From sequence record PP942979.1: a stretch of 64,000 nucleotides of DNA; one strand, written 5' to 3'. This document shows, in pieces, positions 2,782 to 53,780 of the stretch (position 1 is its first letter; each line of letters begins with the position of its first letter). A model generated the notes under the pieces. That model had not been told where the DNA came from, did no database searches, and worked only from the letters and a program-made list of their open reading frames with translations. The position numbers were made by a program, and so were the translations under genes.

Positions 2782-3595
2782 CTACCGCAGTATACCAGAA
2801 GTCCCAACCAGCAGTGTTCGTGCCAGTAGACTTGATGGTGAAACCGCCTAACAAGGCGTTCTCATTCATCGCGCTCGTACCGTCCAGATTGTAGAGCTGG
2901 TAGGTCTTCGCTTGGTTGAGTGCAGCGTTCACGAAGGTAATCTGAATGCTGATACAACGGTTGATGAATGCCGTGTTAAACACAACGTGGATTGTATCAG
3001 TAGTTGACGCGTTCACGACTCGACCCATGTTCTGAGTAAAGCCAGTGTTCATATCGCGGTTACTACCAATCCATGCGTTCGGTATTACAGCGCCGGTCAC
3101 AGGGTTAAGAGCTTGTGCTGTACGATATTCGTCGATAGCAGCATCTCGACCAGGACTACCGGTAGGTCCAGTAGGTCCAGTAGGACCCACAGAGCCAGTA
3201 TTACCAGTAGCGCCGACAGGCCCAGTGTTACCTGTCGGTCCATTACGACCCCTCGGACCACGAGGGCCCGGGCAGCCGTCTTCACCGTCACGCCCATCAC
3301 GACCGTTAGCACCAGGAAGGCCACGCAGACCTTCTTTACCCTGTTTACCTTCGCGTCCTGACTTGAGCTGGTCGGCAGTAGGCAGTCCGATAACACTAGA
3401 CTGACTACCATCTGGCCAAATGACTGTTAGAGTACCTGTAGTTGTGTCGAACTCCACACCCTGAGAGCCGGGAATCTTCGCAGCTTCTGTAGGGTCAATA
3501 AACTCTACAGATGTGCTAGTCTTCTTACCTAACACTTTACCGATAGGGTATGCACCGCCGTCGATAAGTGAAGGATTAATCTTTGTAAGAGACAT
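2774..3595 (-). CDS. Collagen-like fibre protein
   Basis: About 23 Gly-X-Y triplets (GREGKQG...GSPGRD) and a C-terminal beta domain ending WTAVGD-like (WYTAVGD); paralogue of 8759, 9261 and 9893. Confidence 0.85.
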   Translation of the reverse strand: MSLTKINPSLIDGGAYPIGKVLGKKTSTSVEFIDPTEAAKIPGSQGVEFDTTTGTLTVIWPDGSQSSVIGLPTADQLKSGREGKQGKEGLRGLPGANGRDGRDGEDGCPGPRGPRGRNGPTGNTGPVGATGNTGSVGPTGPTGPTGSPGRDAAIDEYRTAQALNPVTGAVIPNAWIGSNRDMNTGFTQNMGRVVNASTTDTIHVVFNTAFINRCISIQITFVNAALNQAKTYQLYNLDGTSAMNENALLGGFTIKSTGTNTAGWDFWYTAVGD

Positions 3596-13754: not shown

Positions 13755-16700
13755 TTACTGATAGCGCACTGTGATAACTGAGGAGCCAAATGCACGAGCG
13801 TTGGTGCGATAAATCAAGACGTTTTCTGTCAGGTTATCATACACCACTTTCCCTACAATCGGACCCTTCTTGCCGTTATCTCCAGTTACAGGCCACTGAG
13901 CACCGTCGAAACCCTGCCACCCTTTGTTTACTGTTCCCGTACCGTCTGCGGCTGCTGAGAATACAGCGGTACCGTATGACTGTCTGACGACAAAGTAACC
14001 GTACTCGTCTTGTTTGGTAGACAACACGAACTGGCCACCTGTCTTAGAACGTAAACGCGTTGGCAACTGAGCAAGTGCAATACTCACGCCAGTAATGCCG
14101 AAAGGCGCAACACCGAAGCGTGGATAAGATGACATGGCTTTCATGAAGTGCGTCTGCGTAAGCGTCTGCTGTCCTTCGATATAGATAGCCTTAACACCAA
14201 AGTCTGTATCGTTAAGCAACGAGGCTATGGTCAGTCGTCCAGTTTGAGCATTGATAGTGATGCCTTGAACATCAACCACATCGCCTTTACTGTTGGTGAT
14301 CTGCCACAGACACTTGGCACTAACATCATCCTTAACGAACGTACCAGTACGGCCGAGTAATGCGTTCATCTGCATTGAACTGTCGTCTCGCACATTCGTA
14401 TATCCGCCTACTGTCAGGTCTTGTGGGAAGCCAATGCCAGGGCAAGTGATTTCCTGAACGAGACTGATTTCAGTACGCTGCTCGGTGATGATACACTCCA
14501 CTTTAACCTTCTGCGGGTCTTTTGATGCAGGGAAGCGGAAGGTACCGTCCTGAGCAAGAGTAAAGCCACTGACAGACTCAATGATGTTCCACTTGAACTT
14601 CACGCTGTTTGCATCAGGCAGACGGCTTGAGCCGGTAGCACCAGAGCGACGCGTATAGAACGCAGTGAAACGATAATCAGTGTTCGGACTGATATTGCCC
14701 GCAGGATTCTCGATGTAGCCGTTGAGAATAGTATTCTGCGTTTGGAGCTCAATGGTGCGCGTACCGATAATGGTTTCATCAGCGAGCGACATTGGGTTCT
14801 GCTTGGTGAACACAGCGCGTAGGTTAATAACACCGTCCGACAACTGCGACTGACCAATGAACAGATGGCCGTTCAGTGGATCGATTGATACGCCGTCAAC
14901 ATTTGTCTCGTCACCAATAGACCAGATAGCGTCAGTGGTCGTGAGTTCGTCATCAGGCTCAATGATAACACGCAGACTGTAGGGAACGTACCAGCGTCCG
15001 TTTTCATATCCGATAGTTGGGTTACGATCAGACACGTCCCACACAACATCAGGACCAACGATGCCAATTTGACGGAGATAAGTGTTAGCCTGCACAAGGA
15101 ACACGAGCAACGTCTTCTCAATCTGATACTGGTCGCACGTAAAGCGAGCGCGAAGCAGCACAGCACCGTTGACGTTCTGACTCGGTGTGAGTGAACCATC
15201 GGCATCAATCTCTGCAATACTGTCTGTTGTTGGGATAAGCACAGGCGTATTGTTGGGACCATCTTGCGTGTAGTAGCTCTGCACGACTGCCCATTCAGAA
15301 TCGACTTCTAGGTCAAACGTCTTTGGTGTTTCCTCAGCGTAAGAGCCATCAAGAGTGCGCATTACGCCACCAGTCTTATACGTGTTGACCAGAGTGTATG
15401 ACTCGGACAGCACATCAGCACTGATTTGCGTTGCACCTTCAATACGGCTGTTGACGATATTGTTGATACTCTGCTTAGGTGCAGGAGAAACGACCAGGTC
15501 AATCTTGTTGCTCACTCGGAAGAATGAGGCAATAACCTGAGTGTAGGTGTCGTACTCATATTGCAGCTTGCCCGTTTGCAGAATAGCACCGTCGTAATAC
15601 GCTTTATTCAGATCAGCAATGCTACCAATCGCGTTGAACATCGGCAGTTTGCTAACGTCCATTGCACGGAAGTCTTTGTAGTCGCTTGGTGTGCGGCCTT
15701 CGATGATCTCAACGATAGCCATACCACTATAGCGACCAGGCGAGAACTGTAAGAACTTATACTCGTCCGTGTCTTTGTCTGGCCAGTTGCCTACCCACTC
15801 AGCGGCTGTCACATACTCTTGACTACCATCAGCGTAGGTTGCAAGCAGACGAACAAAGGTGCGCGTCTTCTCGTACATCACGTCTGGACATTCAATGGTG
15901 ATACTGTCCACCAGCGCTCGTGTTGGAATGAGTTGCAGGTCACGGTAGTTTGAGAGTTTCGTTCCGTCGTACTCATACTCCATGCTGATACGCGCAGAAC
16001 CATGCAGGTCTCCCTGATAGTAAAGCACATACTCTTTAACGCTTCTGCCCATGATTGGGTCGTATACCGTGTTGTTGCTCAGGCTGACGTTCAGCGTTAC
16101 CCAGCGAGCATAGTCAGGATGATCAGGGTCATACTGGCTTGGGTCTTGGCCCTGCTCAACTGCTTGTTGCTGTAACCTGATTGTACGCTGTCTCGCTTCT
16201 TCGATAGCAGAGTCCGACGGAATATACTCGACTTTCACAGCAGCCGCAGCCGCATATGACAGGCCGTTGTTCCACAGGCACACAGTAGGCAACATCAACG
16301 TCGCGCCGCTACTGATAGTAGGAGACGAGCGCAGGTCAATCGACTTCGGAATCATGATCGTATCGTTAACGAGAATGATTCGGTTGAACGTCACTGTAGA
16401 GTTACCATCAATGAACGTGAAGTTCAGGGCATATTTAACAGCATCACCACTGACCAGAGGTGCTTCAAACTCACCGGTTTGCGTATTAACAAAAGGTATA
16501 GCGTTGACCGATGTTGCTTTGTCTTCGCTACTGAACCAGAGGCCAAACACTTCGGTATAAGCAACCACGATCGATGGGTCACGCGCATCAATCTCTGCCT
16601 GAGTAGCAGAAACAAGAACATAGAGAGCCATTGCTTTTGGTCGAACAATATCACGCTCAACAACAGTCGCAGGAACAACGAGGTCAATCGTAGCCAGTTT

Positions 16701-18290
16701 AATCTCAGGCGCCTTCATCGTTACTTGCTTTACAGCCTCAACAGGAGTAACTTCACCAAAGACTGCGTAGATGGAAGTCAGATAATCTCCACGCATAATC
16801 TTAGACTTGAGGACGTTCTCAACGATCTCTGTATGCTCGCTGGTGGTACGAGCCTGAGCGGTACCCAGCTTGGAAGTACCGTCATTGTACGTGATTGCAT
16901 ACTTGAGTTCTACTTCTTCGCCTTGAGGCACTTCATCGTCCACGATAATACGCAACTCGGTTGGCACCAAATCTTTAACACTGCGATTGACGTCGAACTC
17001 CTGAGTCTTGGACATATCGAACTGTCCTTGATAGGAGACGCTTATATCAATCTTGGAATCTGCTTCGACACTAGGCAGAGACAGCGTTGTGCCGTTAAAG
17101 ATGCCCAGCGTAGAACTGAGAGCGATCATACCACTGTCAGTTAATTCTTTGGTCGCACCTGTAGCGAGATACTTACCGTAGACGCGCACCTTAGCGCTCG
17201 CGTTACCGTACAACGTTGGGCACTCAATAGAAAGCTCGTCAGGATCAGGCTCAACCCCCATAGGGTAGATGCGAGACTCAAGTGCCTGCTGAGTACCATT
17301 GTAGGTAAGAGTGAGGTTGATAACAGAGATGGCCAAAGGCTCATTGAAACGAACAGCATTACCATCACGCTCTGCAATCCAAGTAGAGTCTTCTACCCAC
17401 ACCTCAACTGTCTGCTCGGTGCCGTCGCTGTATTTGACGATAGCGCCAAACGTAGTCCACTCACCGCCGCGAATAAACTCAGGCTGAATGAACGAGATGG
17501 ACTTCTGCAAAGGACGGCCGACGTTGAAACGCTTAACAGGCTCAACAACAACGTGAGCGCCAAGATACAACTTAGCACCCAAGTTAATAGCAGCGTACAC
17601 ACCTTCGAGAACTTCTTCGATAGGCGCCCATTGATAAAACAGGTCTGCGATTCGGCGATAGAACATTGCGCTACGTGCGGTATACTGCTCAACGTCGTTG
17701 TTCACAGGCTCAAAGCCAATGTGATTGTTGAACCAGTCTTCCGCTTCCTGTTGCGTCATGCCTACTTCTTGCAGTGCGTTAACAACGTCTTTCTCTGCAT
17801 CTTTGGTGATAGTCAGATCGAGGCCGCCATCAATCAAATGTGCATCTACTTCGAGATTGACCTTGTTCGACTTATACCACGTACCGCCGTCTTGAATCAG
17901 AGTACCAAGAGGAGTAGGCACAAAGGTCTGATAGTCAGCGGTATACAGGCGAGAAGAATCGAACTGACCGCCGAGCAACATACCCACGAACTTAGGCCAC
18001 TGAGTTGTACCAGAGACTTGCTGCCAGTCAGGCAAGCAGTCGATAACACGTTTCAACGAAGGTAAACGATACTGCATCAGGTCACGCGTGATATTGATGC
18101 CGAGCTGGCGAATACTTGCTTCGGCCAACTCGTCGTTTGTGTCACCGCTGATGCGACGAATATTCAACAGTTGCTCAATGGTCTTGAGGTTCTGCTCGTC
18201 GTTGTGTGCATCGAGAATCTCGAACAACTCTGCCCAGGCTTCGTTAGCTTCAAGGAAGTCAATGTTAAAGGCTAGAGTGTTTGATTTCAC
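13755..18290 (-). CDS. Large baseplate wedge-associated protein with Ig-like repeats
   Basis: 1511 aa, directly after the baseplate J/gp6-like gene; multiple (L/I).I.(G/C)P..V......Y.DG repeats typical of Ig-like domains. Confidence 0.75.
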   Translation of the reverse strand: MKSNTLAFNIDFLEANEAWAELFEILDAHNDEQNLKTIEQLLNIRRISGDTNDELAEASIRQLGINITRDLMQYRLPSLKRVIDCLPDWQQVSGTTQWPKFVGMLLGGQFDSSRLYTADYQTFVPTPLGTLIQDGGTWYKSNKVNLEVDAHLIDGGLDLTITKDAEKDVVNALQEVGMTQQEAEDWFNNHIGFEPVNNDVEQYTARSAMFYRRIADLFYQWAPIEEVLEGVYAAINLGAKLYLGAHVVVEPVKRFNVGRPLQKSISFIQPEFIRGGEWTTFGAIVKYSDGTEQTVEVWVEDSTWIAERDGNAVRFNEPLAISVINLTLTYNGTQQALESRIYPMGVEPDPDELSIECPTLYGNASAKVRVYGKYLATGATKELTDSGMIALSSTLGIFNGTTLSLPSVEADSKIDISVSYQGQFDMSKTQEFDVNRSVKDLVPTELRIIVDDEVPQGEEVELKYAITYNDGTSKLGTAQARTTSEHTEIVENVLKSKIMRGDYLTSIYAVFGEVTPVEAVKQVTMKAPEIKLATIDLVVPATVVERDIVRPKAMALYVLVSATQAEIDARDPSIVVAYTEVFGLWFSSEDKATSVNAIPFVNTQTGEFEAPLVSGDAVKYALNFTFIDGNSTVTFNRIILVNDTIMIPKSIDLRSSPTISSGATLMLPTVCLWNNGLSYAAAAAVKVEYIPSDSAIEEARQRTIRLQQQAVEQGQDPSQYDPDHPDYARWVTLNVSLSNNTVYDPIMGRSVKEYVLYYQGDLHGSARISMEYEYDGTKLSNYRDLQLIPTRALVDSITIECPDVMYEKTRTFVRLLATYADGSQEYVTAAEWVGNWPDKDTDEYKFLQFSPGRYSGMAIVEIIEGRTPSDYKDFRAMDVSKLPMFNAIGSIADLNKAYYDGAILQTGKLQYEYDTYTQVIASFFRVSNKIDLVVSPAPKQSINNIVNSRIEGATQISADVLSESYTLVNTYKTGGVMRTLDGSYAEETPKTFDLEVDSEWAVVQSYYTQDGPNNTPVLIPTTDSIAEIDADGSLTPSQNVNGAVLLRARFTCDQYQIEKTLLVFLVQANTYLRQIGIVGPDVVWDVSDRNPTIGYENGRWYVPYSLRVIIEPDDELTTTDAIWSIGDETNVDGVSIDPLNGHLFIGQSQLSDGVINLRAVFTKQNPMSLADETIIGTRTIELQTQNTILNGYIENPAGNISPNTDYRFTAFYTRRSGATGSSRLPDANSVKFKWNIIESVSGFTLAQDGTFRFPASKDPQKVKVECIITEQRTEISLVQEITCPGIGFPQDLTVGGYTNVRDDSSMQMNALLGRTGTFVKDDVSAKCLWQITNSKGDVVDVQGITINAQTGRLTIASLLNDTDFGVKAIYIEGQQTLTQTHFMKAMSSYPRFGVAPFGITGVSIALAQLPTRLRSKTGGQFVLSTKQDEYGYFVVRQSYGTAVFSAAADGTGTVNKGWQGFDGAQWPVTGDNGKKGPIVGKVVYDNLTENVLIYRTNARAFGSSVITVRYQ

Positions 18291-19751: not shown

Positions 19752-20174
19752 TTACTGTGCCCTCATTGCAAACGTAATTGATTGTTTGTCTTCGAGCTTA
19801 GGACAACGCCATGTGATTACACACACGTAGGTCTGCTCGTATTGATCGCTCATGGTGCAGGCTGTCTTGACGCTGGTTACGTCCTGCGTGAGACCGTTGT
19901 ATGGGTCTTCTAGGGCAAGACGCATGTACGTTGCAATCCAGTCAGCCGTTGTTTGATCGAACGGCTCAAACAGATACTGATATACATCGGCACCGAAGTT
20001 CTCACGCCATTTGCGAGACTTCTTACGCGTACCGATTACCATCAGAATCTTCTGGACGATGCTGTCCATGTTCTGCACGTTATCACGCGGTTCAAGTTGA
20101 ATCCACGCATTAATATCACAATAGATGCGCTCGCTAATCGGCACATCTATCAGACGAACTCCGATTCCAGCCAT
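19752..20174 (-). CDS. Baseplate wedge protein (gp25/gpW-like)
   Basis: I..VIGTRK.SR.WRENFGAD...YLFEPFD matches the gp25 family pattern. Confidence 0.85.
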   Translation of the reverse strand: MAGIGVRLIDVPISERIYCDINAWIQLEPRDNVQNMDSIVQKILMVIGTRKKSRKWRENFGADVYQYLFEPFDQTTADWIATYMRLALEDPYNGLTQDVTSVKTACTMSDQYEQTYVCVITWRCPKLEDKQSITFAMRAQ

Positions 20175-20464
20175 TAGCCAAATCTCACATTAGAACTACC
20201 ACTCGAAGCTGTGTCGCCGCAACTGTTAGCGTCACCAGCACGTTGCGCAGGCTTACCGTTGACACGCACACTAGAACTTGAAGTAGCTTTCCCGACATGA
20301 GGAGGCTTCTTTGGTTTCCAGTGAGGACGATAACTATCGCCTTGACGAACACTCCCTTTTCCATTCACAAGCACGTTAGAAGATGCCTGAGCAGGGACAA
20401 CAGGAAAATAACCATTGTGTCCAGTAGACAGATCTGTGCCTAAACGAATAGCTTTCTGACCCAT
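20174..20464 (-). CDS. PAAR-domain spike tip protein
   Basis: AIRLG.D.STGH, V.VNGK...R.GD, H..H and CGD motifs of PAAR proteins. Confidence 0.9.
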   Translation of the reverse strand: MGQKAIRLGTDLSTGHNGYFPVVPAQASSNVLVNGKGSVRQGDSYRPHWKPKKPPHVGKATSSSSVRVNGKPAQRAGDANSCGDTASSGSSNVRFG

Positions 20465-20487
20465 GTTAATTCTCCTCTGTTAGGCAC

Positions 20488-20495
20488 AAATTAGC
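20488..20495 (-). promoter_or_regulatory. Putative phage late promoter GCTAATTT
   Basis: Just downstream of a terminator, ~24 nt before the PAAR ATG. Confidence 0.65.
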
Positions 20496-20508
20496 TTGTT
20501 ATGCAGTA

Positions 20509-20544
20509 GAAACGAAAACGGGCAACCCGAAGGCCGCCCGTTTT
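20509..20544 (-). terminator. Rho-independent terminator with UUCG loop, closing the putative ncRNA
   Basis: Minus strand AAAACGGGCGGCC-UUCG-GGUUGCCCGUUUU followed by CGUUUC. Confidence 0.85.
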
Positions 20545-21760
20545 CTTTGCTTGGATTTGTGTCGCTTAACTCCCTCACACCCGAAGCGAGTGCTCGGTAG
20601 CCGAAGCCACTAAGCCGGAGTTAATGGCCGAGAGTGAAGCCGCACGGCGCGGCAACAGCATGTGACTCTCGGGACCAGATAGCAAGCGACCAAGCATCGC
20701 AATTGCTATCAACGACACGAAGAACAAAATCATGTTTGCTCCTGTGTCTCTACTGTAAGGTAAAACATTTGCAAATGTCGATCAAGTTACTTCAAGTTGC
20801 CCTTCGCCCAACTTCACTAGGGTTTCAACTCTCTTTCTCTCGTTACCGCCTGGGTTGCGGAGACCGCGCACAAGAACAACGCTTCAACGATACGTGGGCA
20901 GGAAGACACGTACCGCATTCACATCGCTCAAGCGAAGGAGGTTACCCATCGGTGATCTGCGGTGGTTAATACACTCTTTAACAATCGCTCTTGTTGTGCA
21001 TTAGATCGTGGTAGGAACGCGATTGACCGCTAACAAGTCCTATACGATATTTCACTACCCGAGAATGGGTATCAGCTATGGCAGCACGTCAACAGCAGCG
21101 GGGCAGCGGACACACTCCATTAAGCATTGTTAAGGGCAATGCTCAACAGGCTGTGAACAGCTTTGACCAAATGCAGAGTCGCTCGTCGCCCGACTTCACT
21201 TGAGTATCTCGTCTGCACTCTTTTACTCCCTGAATACCGTACAAGGAAGACGGCACCCATGAGGGTCTGCGGATGTTTATCACATTAAGACTCTAGCCAA
21301 CTTAATCCCGTACGCAGTGTGTTGAGTCGTCCGCTGGATGACACACTACATACCCCTCACGTTCGTGCATAAGTGGGATATAGCTGGTGGAAGGTTGTCA
21401 TGAAGATTGCATCGCCTGGAGGCTTGCCGTTCTTCCCAATGCACACACGGTGAAAGGCATATGTGCATCAGGCAGCGTAGCTGCAAACTGCTATCCCGAT
21501 AAGAGGGGCCACAACGTTGAGAGTACGTTCCGCCTGTCTTACGCGCCTAGAGGCAACTGCCGTGCCATGTCTGAAAAGAATGAAAAACGCTGGGCCTTGT
21601 GAGCGTCAGCAGCAGAGCAGCAGTCTATCGCGTGGGTGCTGGGGTTAATCCTCACGATTACAGAGCATCACACTCTAACCAGCTGGAGGCTTGCCTACTG
21701 TGGAACGCAGCGACAAGTTTACAGTCAAACAACGTCCGCTAAGTACGCCATCTGACTGGG
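20545..21760 (-). ncRNA. Putative large (~1.2 kb) structured non-coding RNA, family not recognised
   Basis: Only large gap in the window; no minus-strand ORF of 60 aa or more; more than 15 helices, several with G-U pairs that work only on the minus strand; UUCG loops; internal repeats; 3' terminator. Confidence 0.7.
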
Positions 21761-21800
21761 ACAAGTTGATATTACTATCTGCAATTTTTATTTACAGATT

Positions 21801-23564
21801 TTAGAACGCCTTACGCTCAATATTTGAATAAAGAGTATCGTAAGGTTCTGAGTACAGTTCAGGTCCGCGTTGTGCGCGAATCGTCACGTAGCCTGTGTGA
21901 CGGTTGAACGCTGTGATTTCGACAGTCGGCTGTTTAGGCTTGATAGTCGCATAAATCGGAGCATTCAACGTTGGCTCGTCTGTCTGAATCTTATTTACAG
22001 ATTGCAGTGCAGCGCCAGAGATAGCAGGCAGATTAAAACGCAGTTCAGCACGTTTCTGGCCGAATGCCGCGCGAATCATACCGTTCTCCAACTCTACACC
22101 GTTCTGCTTGAGATATGCAGCGATGCGACGTCCGATACCAGTAAGCTGATCGCGAGTGCGCGGGTCAAACGTGCCTTCGAAGCTGATTGCTTCTGCGGGC
22201 TGACGTACAGACAAATGCAGGCCTGTGTTGAAATAGCCTTCGGTCAGCAGACGCAGGATTTCTTTCACGACTTCTTTGGTGTTCGTCTTGATAGCAGCGA
22301 TACGCAGTTCAGGAACGTCCACTTTAATCGGGTCACGAAGCTCGGTCTGGTTGTCCATATAGCCGAGTGAGATATGCTTCGCATTGGCATACGTGTGTTG
22401 CAGCACACCAGTCGCGCGAATCAATACAGAGCCACCTTTTGCAAGGTCATAAAGTTCATCGCTGGTGGTTGTGCTGAACAGGTAATAGTCCGTAGGTACG
22501 GCCATGCGATTAACAGCTTCAATCGCTTTGGTTTGAGCTTCTTTGACAGTTGAGCCAAAGACTACGCGACTACGATTCGGCTGGGCAGCAGATACAGGGA
22601 AGAACGCACCATAGACAACGCTAACGTTTTTCTTAATCGGACGTTCAGACTGAATCTTCTTACCGCCAGGCAGAGAAGGTAGCTTAACGCCCACCAGCTT
22701 ACCTTTGACGATAGCTTTGTTCTCTTTGACCGGCTTGAGGCTGTCAATGAGTTTCGCCAGATCAGCACCGCTAAGAATCTTCTCCAGCGGAACAGCGAGG
22801 TTCTGCGGCAGATAGTGTTTCTTGCGGAACATATAGATAACGGTGTCTTTCTTGATCTGCACGGGCGTAGCCATGTTGCGACCAATAACACCTACCGGCT
22901 GGAACGTGTTTGCTTTGTCATCACCGATAGAGCCGAACTGCTTAGTGAACTCAGTCTGGCCGATGATGTTAGCAGCGCGTAAATGACCACGAATGATGAA
23001 CACGATTTTCGGGTCATCTTTCATGCGCAACTCGTAGCGGTCACGGTTCAGATAAACCATGCTGTACTTGTCGCCTTTCTCCAGCTCCAGATCGTACTCG
23101 TCGTTAGCGTCATCAACAACGACTTTCTTACCTACGTAGGTACCGTACGTGCGCTGGCCAGCAGACTCAGAAGCAATCTGCAATGCTTTGCCACTGTTAG
23201 ACAGGGAGGCAGCGAAGTCCATAACAGCGGGCATCAGGTCTAAAGACGATGCTACAGCGTATGGCTTGCGCTTCTCACCAAGATGCAAATGAACAGCGCT
23301 ACTGCTGGACATGAACACGGTTGTGCCTACATCTTCGTGTGTACCAGCGAAGTGCATACCGCTAATACGTTCGATGATGTTTGCGTTGAGCGATTGGAAG
23401 TTTACTTCGCTACCTGCGGTGAAGTCATAAATTTCACCGTTACGCCACGCATAGGCAACGTTGTTTGAGCTTAGACCTACGAACGCATCACCCAACTGAC
23501 GCACGGTCAACGGCATGATGCTCAGGTCACGAATAATCGAGGACTGCTTTTGAATGAGGTTCAT
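21801..23564 (-). CDS. Hypothetical protein (putative virion/internal head protein)
   Basis: 587 aa; carries a copy of the beta-rich domain shared with 36068, 44631 and 51868, and S-x-S motifs. Confidence 0.75.
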   Translation of the reverse strand: MNLIQKQSSIIRDLSIMPLTVRQLGDAFVGLSSNNVAYAWRNGEIYDFTAGSEVNFQSLNANIIERISGMHFAGTHEDVGTTVFMSSSSAVHLHLGEKRKPYAVASSLDLMPAVMDFAASLSNSGKALQIASESAGQRTYGTYVGKKVVVDDANDEYDLELEKGDKYSMVYLNRDRYELRMKDDPKIVFIIRGHLRAANIIGQTEFTKQFGSIGDDKANTFQPVGVIGRNMATPVQIKKDTVIYMFRKKHYLPQNLAVPLEKILSGADLAKLIDSLKPVKENKAIVKGKLVGVKLPSLPGGKKIQSERPIKKNVSVVYGAFFPVSAAQPNRSRVVFGSTVKEAQTKAIEAVNRMAVPTDYYLFSTTTSDELYDLAKGGSVLIRATGVLQHTYANAKHISLGYMDNQTELRDPIKVDVPELRIAAIKTNTKEVVKEILRLLTEGYFNTGLHLSVRQPAEAISFEGTFDPRTRDQLTGIGRRIAAYLKQNGVELENGMIRAAFGQKRAELRFNLPAISGAALQSVNKIQTDEPTLNAPIYATIKPKQPTVEITAFNRHTGYVTIRAQRGPELYSEPYDTLYSNIERKAF

Positions 23565-53772: not shown

Positions 53773-53780
53773 AAATTAGC
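53773..53780 (-). promoter_or_regulatory. Putative phage late promoter GCTAATTT
   Basis: Just after a hairpin, ~34 nt before the ATG at 53739. Confidence 0.65.

Follow-up and report, generated by a model that had tools for sequence, protein, structure and literature searches.

An apparently new class of very large structured RNA encoded among the virion genes of Erwinia phage phB78 and related jumbo phages

The gap upstream of the PAAR gene

The stretch of DNA analysed here (the window) comprises 64 kb of the genome of Erwinia phage phB78 (PP942979.1, Alexandravirus, 261.8 kb); subtracting 62,000 from a record coordinate gives the window coordinate. The first 49 kb of the window contain 49 annotated genes, all tightly packed on the minus strand and mostly virion genes. 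Among them is an ORF-free gap (20465-21800; ORF, open reading frame) that is flanked by the PAAR spike gene (20174-20464) and by the gene for a 587-amino acid (aa) protein of Pfam family PF20294 (KMPT-N; 21801-23564). The claim that this is the only large gap in 64 kb was confirmed, since it is the sole internal stretch of at least 200 nucleotides (nt) in the window that lacks a minus-strand ORF of at least 70 aa; the GenBank record carries no annotation inside it. Here we show by comparison with related phages that 20505-21800, read on the minus strand, encodes a conserved RNA with dense base pairing, which by its predicted structure is among the largest structured non-ribosomal RNAs known for a bacterial virus.

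A blastn search recovered the gap region in 46 phage records at 100-70% identity, with at least 80% coverage in 34 of them. We compared 15 distinct relatives, drawn from Alexandravirus species, Dickeya phage AD1, Sasquatchvirus Y3 and the SNUABM_14 group, and a gap of 1,267-1,456 nt was present at the same site in all 15; across every relative examined, metagenomic phages included, its size was 1.1-1.46 kb. In the 15 genomes the gap was either unannotated or filled with differing short spurious ORFs on either strand, such that nine of the 15 records list at least one spurious 'hypothetical protein' gene within it, and no genes had been called in the gap in the metagenomic contigs found via the protein collection (L064-L068 and L070). 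The PF20294 protein adjoins the RNA in every relative. No similarity to the RNA was detected by blastn in 5,426 E. coli genomes and 72,556 plasmids, a set that included no Erwinia genome collection.

For most of its length the gap is non-coding. Each of the six frames contains all three stop codons in the gaps of all 15 relatives, so that a reassigned stop codon cannot rescue a gene, and both stop-codon reassignment and a hidden long ORF were thereby ruled out. Column entropy in the RNA body (20775-21767, minus strand) was ∼0.7-0.8 at each phase without three-base periodicity, compared with 0.28/0.24/1.09 for the PAAR gene. We conclude that ∼1 kb of the RNA is non-coding. The whole transcript is not, since its final ∼160 nt bear a conserved small ORF; the original prediction of a non-coding RNA therefore holds for the ∼1-kb body and fails at the 3′ end, where the small ORF had been missed.

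Conserved base pairing, anatomy and spread of the RNA

Covariation in the syntenic gap of relatives and folding energy relative to dinucleotide-shuffled controls had been set as checks by the original prediction, and both came out in its favour. In an RNAalifold consensus structure of 15 sequences, compensatory double changes were found at 132 of 301 predicted pairs. When the alignment was folded with RIBOSUM scoring, the minus strand reached −625.5 versus −532.7 for the plus strand, and 24 column shuffles that preserve conservation gave only −396±13.4 (z = −17.1). As a single sequence, the minus strand folded better than all 20 of its dinucleotide shuffles (z = −2.25), and the plus strand gave z = +0.75. 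To guard against circularity, we also derived a structure from eight phB78-clade sequences and scored it on 12 held-out lineages, counting as double-changed those cells in which both partners differ from the training consensus. Of 820 such cells, 594 (72%) were still canonical, compared with 30-41% when the 3′ partner was slid by 1-3 columns, and at least one compensatory change was seen at 176 of 407 predicted pairs in the held-out set. In a helix table built on 20 non-redundant sequences, 166 covarying pairs are spread over 47 helices of at least 3 bp, mostly in the body.

One explanation for a long interval without genes is that it is a relic, left by a decayed gene, an intron or a mobile element and now without function, and the absent annotation or differing spurious small ORFs among the genomes are compatible with such an origin. 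However, neutral DNA would lose pairing, whereas the gap is kept at 1.1-1.46 kb with compensatory changes down to 50-60% RNA identity. Moreover, the genes on both sides are complete and full-length in all relatives, so that nothing is interrupted; no transposase, reverse transcriptase or homing endonuclease adjoins the gap in the phB78 annotation; and no intron model matches, which also led us to reject a group I or group II intron. A relic is thus the least probable of the explanations considered here.

The pairing is also specific to one strand. The minus-strand model contains 734 G-U cells versus 84 A-C cells, in agreement with the earlier reading of the wobble pairs as G-U on the minus strand, and the plus-strand model contains 258 A-C cells, each of which becomes G-U when read on the minus strand. 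This asymmetry bears on the idea that the locus acts as DNA, as a replication origin, a packaging site or a protein-binding element whose hairpins form in the DNA itself. Such an element might well occupy the sole large non-coding stretch in 64 kb, and the gap does begin with a nearly invariant block of 33 nt that is partly palindromic in phB78. Yet a cruciform needs both strands and the minus strand alone outperforms its shuffles, the palindrome is lost in two relatives, and the covariation extends across 1.2 kb rather than a short site. A search for the features of an origin or packaging site likewise led us to drop that candidate: the gap contains no iterons and only one direct repeat, a pair of 13 nt; its G+C content (0.50) equals that of its flanks and of the genome; and the cumulative GC skew does not turn there. 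We therefore consider a DNA-level element very improbable.

Read from its 5′ end on the minus strand, the structured body starts with two hairpins (21690-21758) that formed in one-by-one folds of nearly all of 23 sequences with little sequence identity. The first contains the helix 21751-21758/21722-21729 and was seen in the individual folds but missed by the alignment; the second, H3 (21710-21717 with 21690-21698), covaries at all eight pairs. It is this hairpin that led us to reject a 5′/3′ closing helix (21709-21715 with 20560-20566), which had been suggested earlier: the would-be 5′ arm pairs locally in H3 and varies freely, whereas the 3′ arm is invariant. A multi-helix domain follows (H5-H9, 21541-21689), with a 20-bp interrupted helix and covariation at 15 of 20 pairs in H8 and 4 of 7 in H9. 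The next domain (H10-H13, 21399-21539), for which we built the covariance model R1, consists of a three-way region and the long hairpin H12, which includes 21458-21467/21440-21449 and covaries at 7 of 13 pairs. Across 19 sequences, 96.9% of the cells of the R1 domain were paired and 14 of its 29 pairs changed on both sides, a result that none of 500 shuffles reached; slid controls gave 2-6. Hairpin H15/H16 (21311-21352; helix 21341-21353/21310-21322) covaries at all 10 stem pairs, with 4.3 pair types per position and a loop that is conserved in most relatives.

The 3′ half of the body is organised around two modules. Module 1 (21160-21287), described by the model R2, scores 147 bits in the window and is followed by a small hairpin, the long hairpin H23 and H24 (21083-21161), with H23 (including 21137-21143/21123-21129) covarying at 9 of 13 pairs, and by the domain H25-H29 (20961-21059; H26, 6 of 10). 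Module 2 (H32-H36, 20775-20978) covaries at 7 of 12 pairs in H33, 8 of 11 in H34 (20907-20913/20890-20896) and 9 of 12 in H36. Beyond the body, H37 has 3 covarying pairs of 14, and a series of 3′ hairpins (H38-H43, 20568-20711) overlaps the small ORF, with covariation at 8 of 12 pairs in H38 (20703-20710/20678-20685), 6 of 8 in H39 (20665-20672/20628-20635), 4 of 6 in H40, 3 of 5 in H41, 5 of 9 in H42 and 3 of 5 in H43; H41-H43 correspond to a helix (20617-20624/20566-20573) that encloses two hairpins. Apart from H3, every helix located here by both of its arms had been proposed from the phB78 sequence, and all except the closing helix were recovered.

Short sequence features were also seen within the RNA. 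CCUCC stretches occur on the minus strand at 21685-21689, 21418-21422 and 20937-20941, two of them within well-conserved blocks, and are complementary to the AGGAG or GGAG ribosome-binding sites that precede the window's genes. In one energy-only fold the stretch at 21685-21689 was paired with the PAAR ribosome-binding site, a pairing that shows no covariation. In the 13-nt repeat, 21416-21428 is a duplicate of 21683-21695, and this copy is confined to the lineage of phB78, SNUABM_1 and SNUABM_17.

When the covariance model of module 1 was compared with module 2, it matched over its full length (33 bits, E = 5e-6), and likewise in six relatives, module 2 being a copy with an insertion of ∼75 nt. 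With the two modules aligned jointly, 22 of 28 pairs changed on both sides and the covariation score was 0.45 versus 0.185 (0 of 500 shuffles). These matches show that the RNA, as modelled, is built partly from a duplicated structural module of ∼130 nt. A weaker match of R1 to the H23 stretch (18 bits in contig L037 at 3061-3190, where it runs into the end of module 1; in the window, at 21113-21157, 11 bits) is a hint of likeness between the long hairpin H12 and hairpin H23. A natural variant with a single module was found in a metagenomic phage (L066, 5259-6370), whose RNA of 1,112 nt lacks RNA positions 405-639, equivalent to window 21162-21396 (H15 and module 1), and retains the remaining domains, the small ORF and the terminator.

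Searches guided by the PF20294 protein added lineages in which the RNA is 50-76% identical (L037, L053/L068 and L064-L067), and the alignments show an RNA with compensated pairing in every Alexandravirus and Sasquatchvirus genome as well as in related metagenomic phages. In a more distant set with PF20294 proteins 42-51% identical (Yoloswagvirus, Rivsvirus SNUABM_5, the Salmondvirus JA phages, fHe-Yen9-02 and the contigs L038, L039, L062, L070 and L071), the interval between the PF20294 and PAAR genes was 1.3-2.4 kb, in most cases beginning with the same promoter-like core as in phB78, and non-coding stretches of 0.6-1.3 kb followed this core. Nhmmer found little in these intervals, and the covariance models matched on the gene strand: R2 with 27.3, 22.2, 21.6 and 19.6 bits (E 4e-5 to 4e-3) and the long hairpin of R1 with 23.2 bits (E = 7e-4). 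The model matches thus show diverged copies of the module at the same gap in three more genera, represented by Yoloswag-, SNUABM_5- and JA11-like phages. At 31% identity, the furthest PF20294 homolog had neither a gap nor synteny with PAAR. A 20-nt module motif searched in 185,579 GTDB species genomes and a 17-nt motif searched in IMG/VR returned only this phage lineage and chance matches, the latter being rejected by the covariance model.

The putative transcription unit, its small ORF and its proposed role

The best-conserved stretch of the locus is a promoter-like block on the minus strand (21768-21800) directly upstream of the body, with the core CTGTAAATA at 21789-21797; at all 33 positions the window's letter is present in at least 90% of 20 sequences. 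The window contains four copies of the core, each on the minus strand, versus 0.3 expected, and one of them lies ∼25 nt before a gene start; the core also follows the PF20294 gene in seven of eight loci of more distant relatives checked (Yoloswag, SNUABM_5, JA13/JA29, fHe-Yen9-02 and two of three metagenomic phages). Its palindrome is lost in two relatives, and the block therefore resembles a DNA signal more than an RNA hairpin. A second extended copy (21992-22006, minus strand), which shares 15 nt with 21785-21799 of the block, lies in the 3′ end of the 587-aa gene, ∼200 nt upstream, and may be a tandem or internal start signal. Three lineages carry an insert of 37-76 nt between the 587-aa gene and the block (L009:3824-3899, L010:3823-3898, L065:5265-5301 and L068:5271-5308), which encodes an ORF of 7-20 codons with a shared four-residue end (an aromatic residue, then G-E-G) just before the block.

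At the other edge of the unit, a terminator scan identified an intrinsic terminator (H46; 20505-20545, minus strand; placed at 20545-20514 by the scan) composed of a 14-bp stem, a 4-nt loop and a U tract; it is conserved, with 98% of cells paired and 2 covarying pairs. Outside the RNA, a different promoter-like motif, GCTAATTT (20488-20495, minus strand), precedes the PAAR ribosome-binding site. GCTAATTT is found eight times in the window (560, 3749, 13698, 20488, 26099, 39046, 53773 and 60372), all on the minus strand, versus 1.6 copies expected. Five copies, including that at 20488, are followed after 20-50 nt by the start of an annotated gene, in most cases one of the virion cluster, and two of these five are directly 3′ of terminator-like hairpins; the copy at 53773 shortly precedes the beginning of a long ORF. 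GCTAATTT is probably the late-promoter motif of this phage family. From these signals we infer that the RNA is its own transcription unit, with a primary transcript of ∼1.25-1.3 kb and a putative start at the CTGTAAATA block, and that the downstream PAAR and baseplate genes restart from GCTAATTT. The earlier picture of a self-contained unit, with a terminator after the RNA and a fresh promoter motif for PAAR, is therefore upheld at the level of motifs. In AD1, 2910A, SNUABM_33 and SNUABM_3, an extra stretch of ∼125 nt with an ORF of 40-42 codons lies between the GCTAATTT region and PAAR (L005:2371-2497, L006:2376-2497, L007:2376-2497 and L008:2374-2497); it is absent from phB78 and the other relatives.

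The small ORF (20575-20733, minus strand; 52 codons plus stop) ends 30 nt before the terminator and has a Shine-Dalgarno sequence, AGGAG (20739-20743), located 5-8 nt before the ATG in 15 of 17 full-length sequences. Its frame is open in all 19 sequences, the remaining two frames being closed in nearly all, and its length changes, within a range of 47-53 codons, are multiples of three nucleotides. The N-terminal half is hydrophobic, and codons 1-20 show entropies of 0.78/0.31/0.73; such conservation of the second position, with the first and third free, is a signature of selection for hydrophobic residues, although the covarying helix H38 also lies within this part. Codons 21-52 show no periodicity and coincide with the covarying hairpins H39-H43. 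A homologue search returned only five sequences, all from close relatives, and no family. Homologous small ORFs are present in Yoloswag, SNUABM_5 and L039, and a CTGTAAA core lies 65-85 nt upstream of the small ORF in Yoloswag and L039 and of the equivalent site in JA29 and L071, the Yoloswag copy being extended into a longer promoter-like motif. In Yoloswag-like phages, several genes and this second promoter-like motif separate the RNA-like region from the small ORF. We read the small ORF as a genuine, weakly constrained predicted peptide gene within the structured RNA that is separable from the 1-kb body.

The small-ORF element is parted from the RNA-like region by one to seven small genes in Yoloswag, SNUABM_5 and the JA phages (L030:6485-7275, L031:6401-7857, L032:6513-6824 and L033:6780-7091). 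This site appears to accept insertions.

We propose that the transcript has a dual function, with a 3′ end that would be translated into a peptide of 47-53 residues with a hydrophobic N-terminal helix and a 1-kb body that would act as RNA in trans during infection. The body would fold into a compact multi-domain particle, in which the repeated modules and long hairpins may dock with one another or bind multiple copies of a protein from the phage or the host, so that it would serve as an architectural or scaffold RNA, like the large 'ornate' phage-associated RNAs, and not as the regulator of a single gene. A trans-acting architectural RNA is favoured because of the size of the body, the number of its independently covarying domains, the recurrence of modules and hairpins within it, and the fact that it can be separated from the small ORF, as seen in other genera. 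We give this statement as a whole a probability of roughly 0.55.

The strongest competing explanation is that the 1-kb structure is a giant cis-acting leader, the 5′ untranslated region of an mRNA for the small hydrophobic peptide (or, in other genera, for the genes that follow), which would control stability, translation or termination, possibly by masking or freeing the Shine-Dalgarno sequence or by linking small-ORF translation to the terminator. The frame kept open in every sequence, the consensus folds in which H37 pairs the region around the Shine-Dalgarno sequence, the complementarity of the CCUCC stretches at 21685-21689 and 20937-20941 to AGGAG-type ribosome-binding sites of the phage, and the position of the terminator shortly behind the stop codon are all compatible with a leader. 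However, H37 is among the helices with few covarying pairs, no alternative (switching) structure was detected, and in four distant lineages the small ORF has its own CTGTAAA core. The genes inserted in Yoloswag-, SNUABM_5- and JA-like phages likewise part the small ORF from the RNA-like region. The length of the body (∼1 kb), its more than 30 covarying helices and its duplicated module would not readily be accounted for by a leader either; we know of no described bacterial leader for a peptide of ∼50 residues that approaches this size and complexity. A cis-acting leader is therefore unlikely in our view, though it deserves serious consideration.

Several observations weigh against the dual-function reading and should be set beside it. 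The body lies directly upstream of a conserved, Shine-Dalgarno-bearing small ORF on the same strand, as a leader would, and in Yoloswag-like phages the RNA-like region stands directly before genes, with no terminator found between it and the inserted genes in a crude scan. The promoter role of the block at 21768-21800 is read from its position and recurrence, and in phB78 no terminator was found between the upstream gene and the block, so that read-through transcripts are possible. Outside the nested model, no covarying pseudoknots or long-range helices emerged from a scan of 19 sequences, of limited power, that required a stack of 5 bp or more and three or more covarying pairs. The loops that might make loop-loop contacts are invariant. 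Columns at least 95% identical made up 11% of unpaired and 26% of paired positions; unpaired columns are thus not the better conserved ones and do not in particular point to a ligand pocket or active site. The variant in L066 implies that either H15 and module 1 are dispensable or the L066 phage is defective. Finally, the docking and scaffold part of the reading is proposed by analogy alone.

A broader version of the trans-acting architectural reading would make the RNA the founding member of a class of RNAs longer than 1 kb confined to a clade of Enterobacterales jumbo phages, derived by internal duplication from an ancient module common to at least five genera and forming an RNA or ribonucleoprotein particle that is active in infection and does not regulate a neighbouring gene. 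We offer this version tentatively, as a possibility, and the roles that come to mind for such a particle (a tail or baseplate scaffold, a packaged RNA or a decoy for host defences) are guesses.

The neighbouring PF20294 gene gave no further guidance. Its protein matched no named PHROG and no PDB sequence, and a confident AlphaFold2 model of it (mean predicted local distance difference test score, pLDDT, of 82.4) gave no Foldseek match below E = 0.05; the protein may have an undescribed fold, and we dropped it as a clue to the function of the RNA. Elsewhere in the window, an HNH endonuclease gene is annotated at 1488-2312, within the tail-fibre gene cluster. The tail protein gene SHZ78_106 is annotated to 18077, and its ORF continues to a GTG at 18290 (13755-18290, 1,511 aa), in agreement with its 4,536-nt counterparts in relatives; the start annotated for phB78 thus probably makes the gene too short, and with the longer ORF an apparent gap of 209 nt disappears.

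Comparison with known RNA classes

To compare the RNA with described families we searched Rfam 15, whose 4227 models include GOLLD, ROOL, OLE, group I and II introns, RNase P, transfer-messenger RNA (tmRNA), 6S and riboswitches. At gathering thresholds no model gave a hit anywhere in the window; within 20400-21900 the top score reached 16.6 bits, compared with thresholds of 42-75, and the matches lay on the terminator or arose by chance; and four relatives gave no match at E<0.1. ARAGORN found no transfer RNA (tRNA) or tmRNA in the 64-kb window; together with the Rfam result, the reported lack of tRNA, tmRNA, RNase P and group I/II hallmarks stands. We found no mention of the RNA in the papers searched, which dealt with AD1, Y3, Alexandra, Yoloswag, the JA phages and PaBG, or in surveys of large RNAs. 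Together with the covariation and the strand asymmetry, these results bear out the prediction of a new large structured RNA on the minus strand: it apparently belongs to no described family and represents a new class of very large structured phage RNA.

To our knowledge, very few classes of structured RNA longer than 500 nt exist outside ribosomal RNA, and each large class that we know of so far (RNase P, group I and II introns, OLE, GOLLD and ROOL) has yielded new RNA architecture or chemistry. The phB78 RNA offers a body of ∼1 kb with more than 30 covariation-supported helices, an internal duplication and a natural one-copy variant. A long-standing obstacle has been that orphan large RNAs are known chiefly from metagenomes; this one is found in cultivated lytic phages of well-studied, tractable laboratory hosts (Erwinia and Dickeya), which makes its expression, structure and partners directly measurable. 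Its discovery also means that jumbo phage annotation that relies solely on ORF calling hides at least one conserved gene.

Among phage RNAs, the packaging RNA of phi29 (pRNA; ∼170 nt, encoded at a genome end) bears no similarity to the phB78 RNA, yet it too is a phage-encoded structured RNA, and either might act in virion assembly; the phB78 RNA lies among virion genes. A second comparison is with the mRNAs of type I toxin-antitoxin systems of the hok/sok type, which also carry a small hydrophobic peptide of ∼50 residues on a strongly folded mRNA, and a peptide-like ORF is indeed present in the phB78 unit. However, the fold upstream of it is several times longer, and the C-terminal half of the small ORF appears to be under constraint from RNA structure and not from protein. 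No antisense gene was seen, the plus strand folds no better than random, and a scan showed no conserved promoter-like site on the plus strand.

The dual-function RNAs SgrS/SgrT, RNAIII/delta-haemolysin and SR1/SR1P are 200-500 nt long and base-pair with target mRNAs. Like them, the phB78 unit would combine a structured part acting as RNA with a short translated ORF, here a predicted one, in a single transcript, although its structured part measures ∼1 kb. OLE, an ornate large RNA found in extremophilic Firmicutes, acts together with small membrane proteins. It is a cellular RNA and its model gives no match, and in phB78 the predicted hydrophobic peptide is encoded within the RNA's own transcript; still, the genetic linkage of a large structured RNA to a small membrane-type protein is a lead that the two have in common.

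The closest parallels are GOLLD and ROOL, which are carried by bacteria and prophages and often lie beside tRNA genes. Neither their sequences nor their covariance models match the phB78 RNA, which is longer (a body of ∼1 kb and a putative transcript of ∼1.25 kb), occurs in lytic jumbo phages of Enterobacterales, has an internal module duplication and a terminal small ORF, and has no tRNA neighbours, so that the ornate-RNA trait of adjacency to tRNA genes is missing. Cryo-electron microscopy has shown that GOLLD and ROOL form homo-oligomeric assemblies (PMC12286853). In other respects the three are alike. The body, at more than 500 nt, non-coding and with many covarying helices, has the properties used here to describe large ornate RNAs, and like GOLLD and ROOL the phB78 RNA is very large, multi-domain, supported by covariation, borne by phages or prophages, mostly untranslated and equipped with its own putative expression signals.

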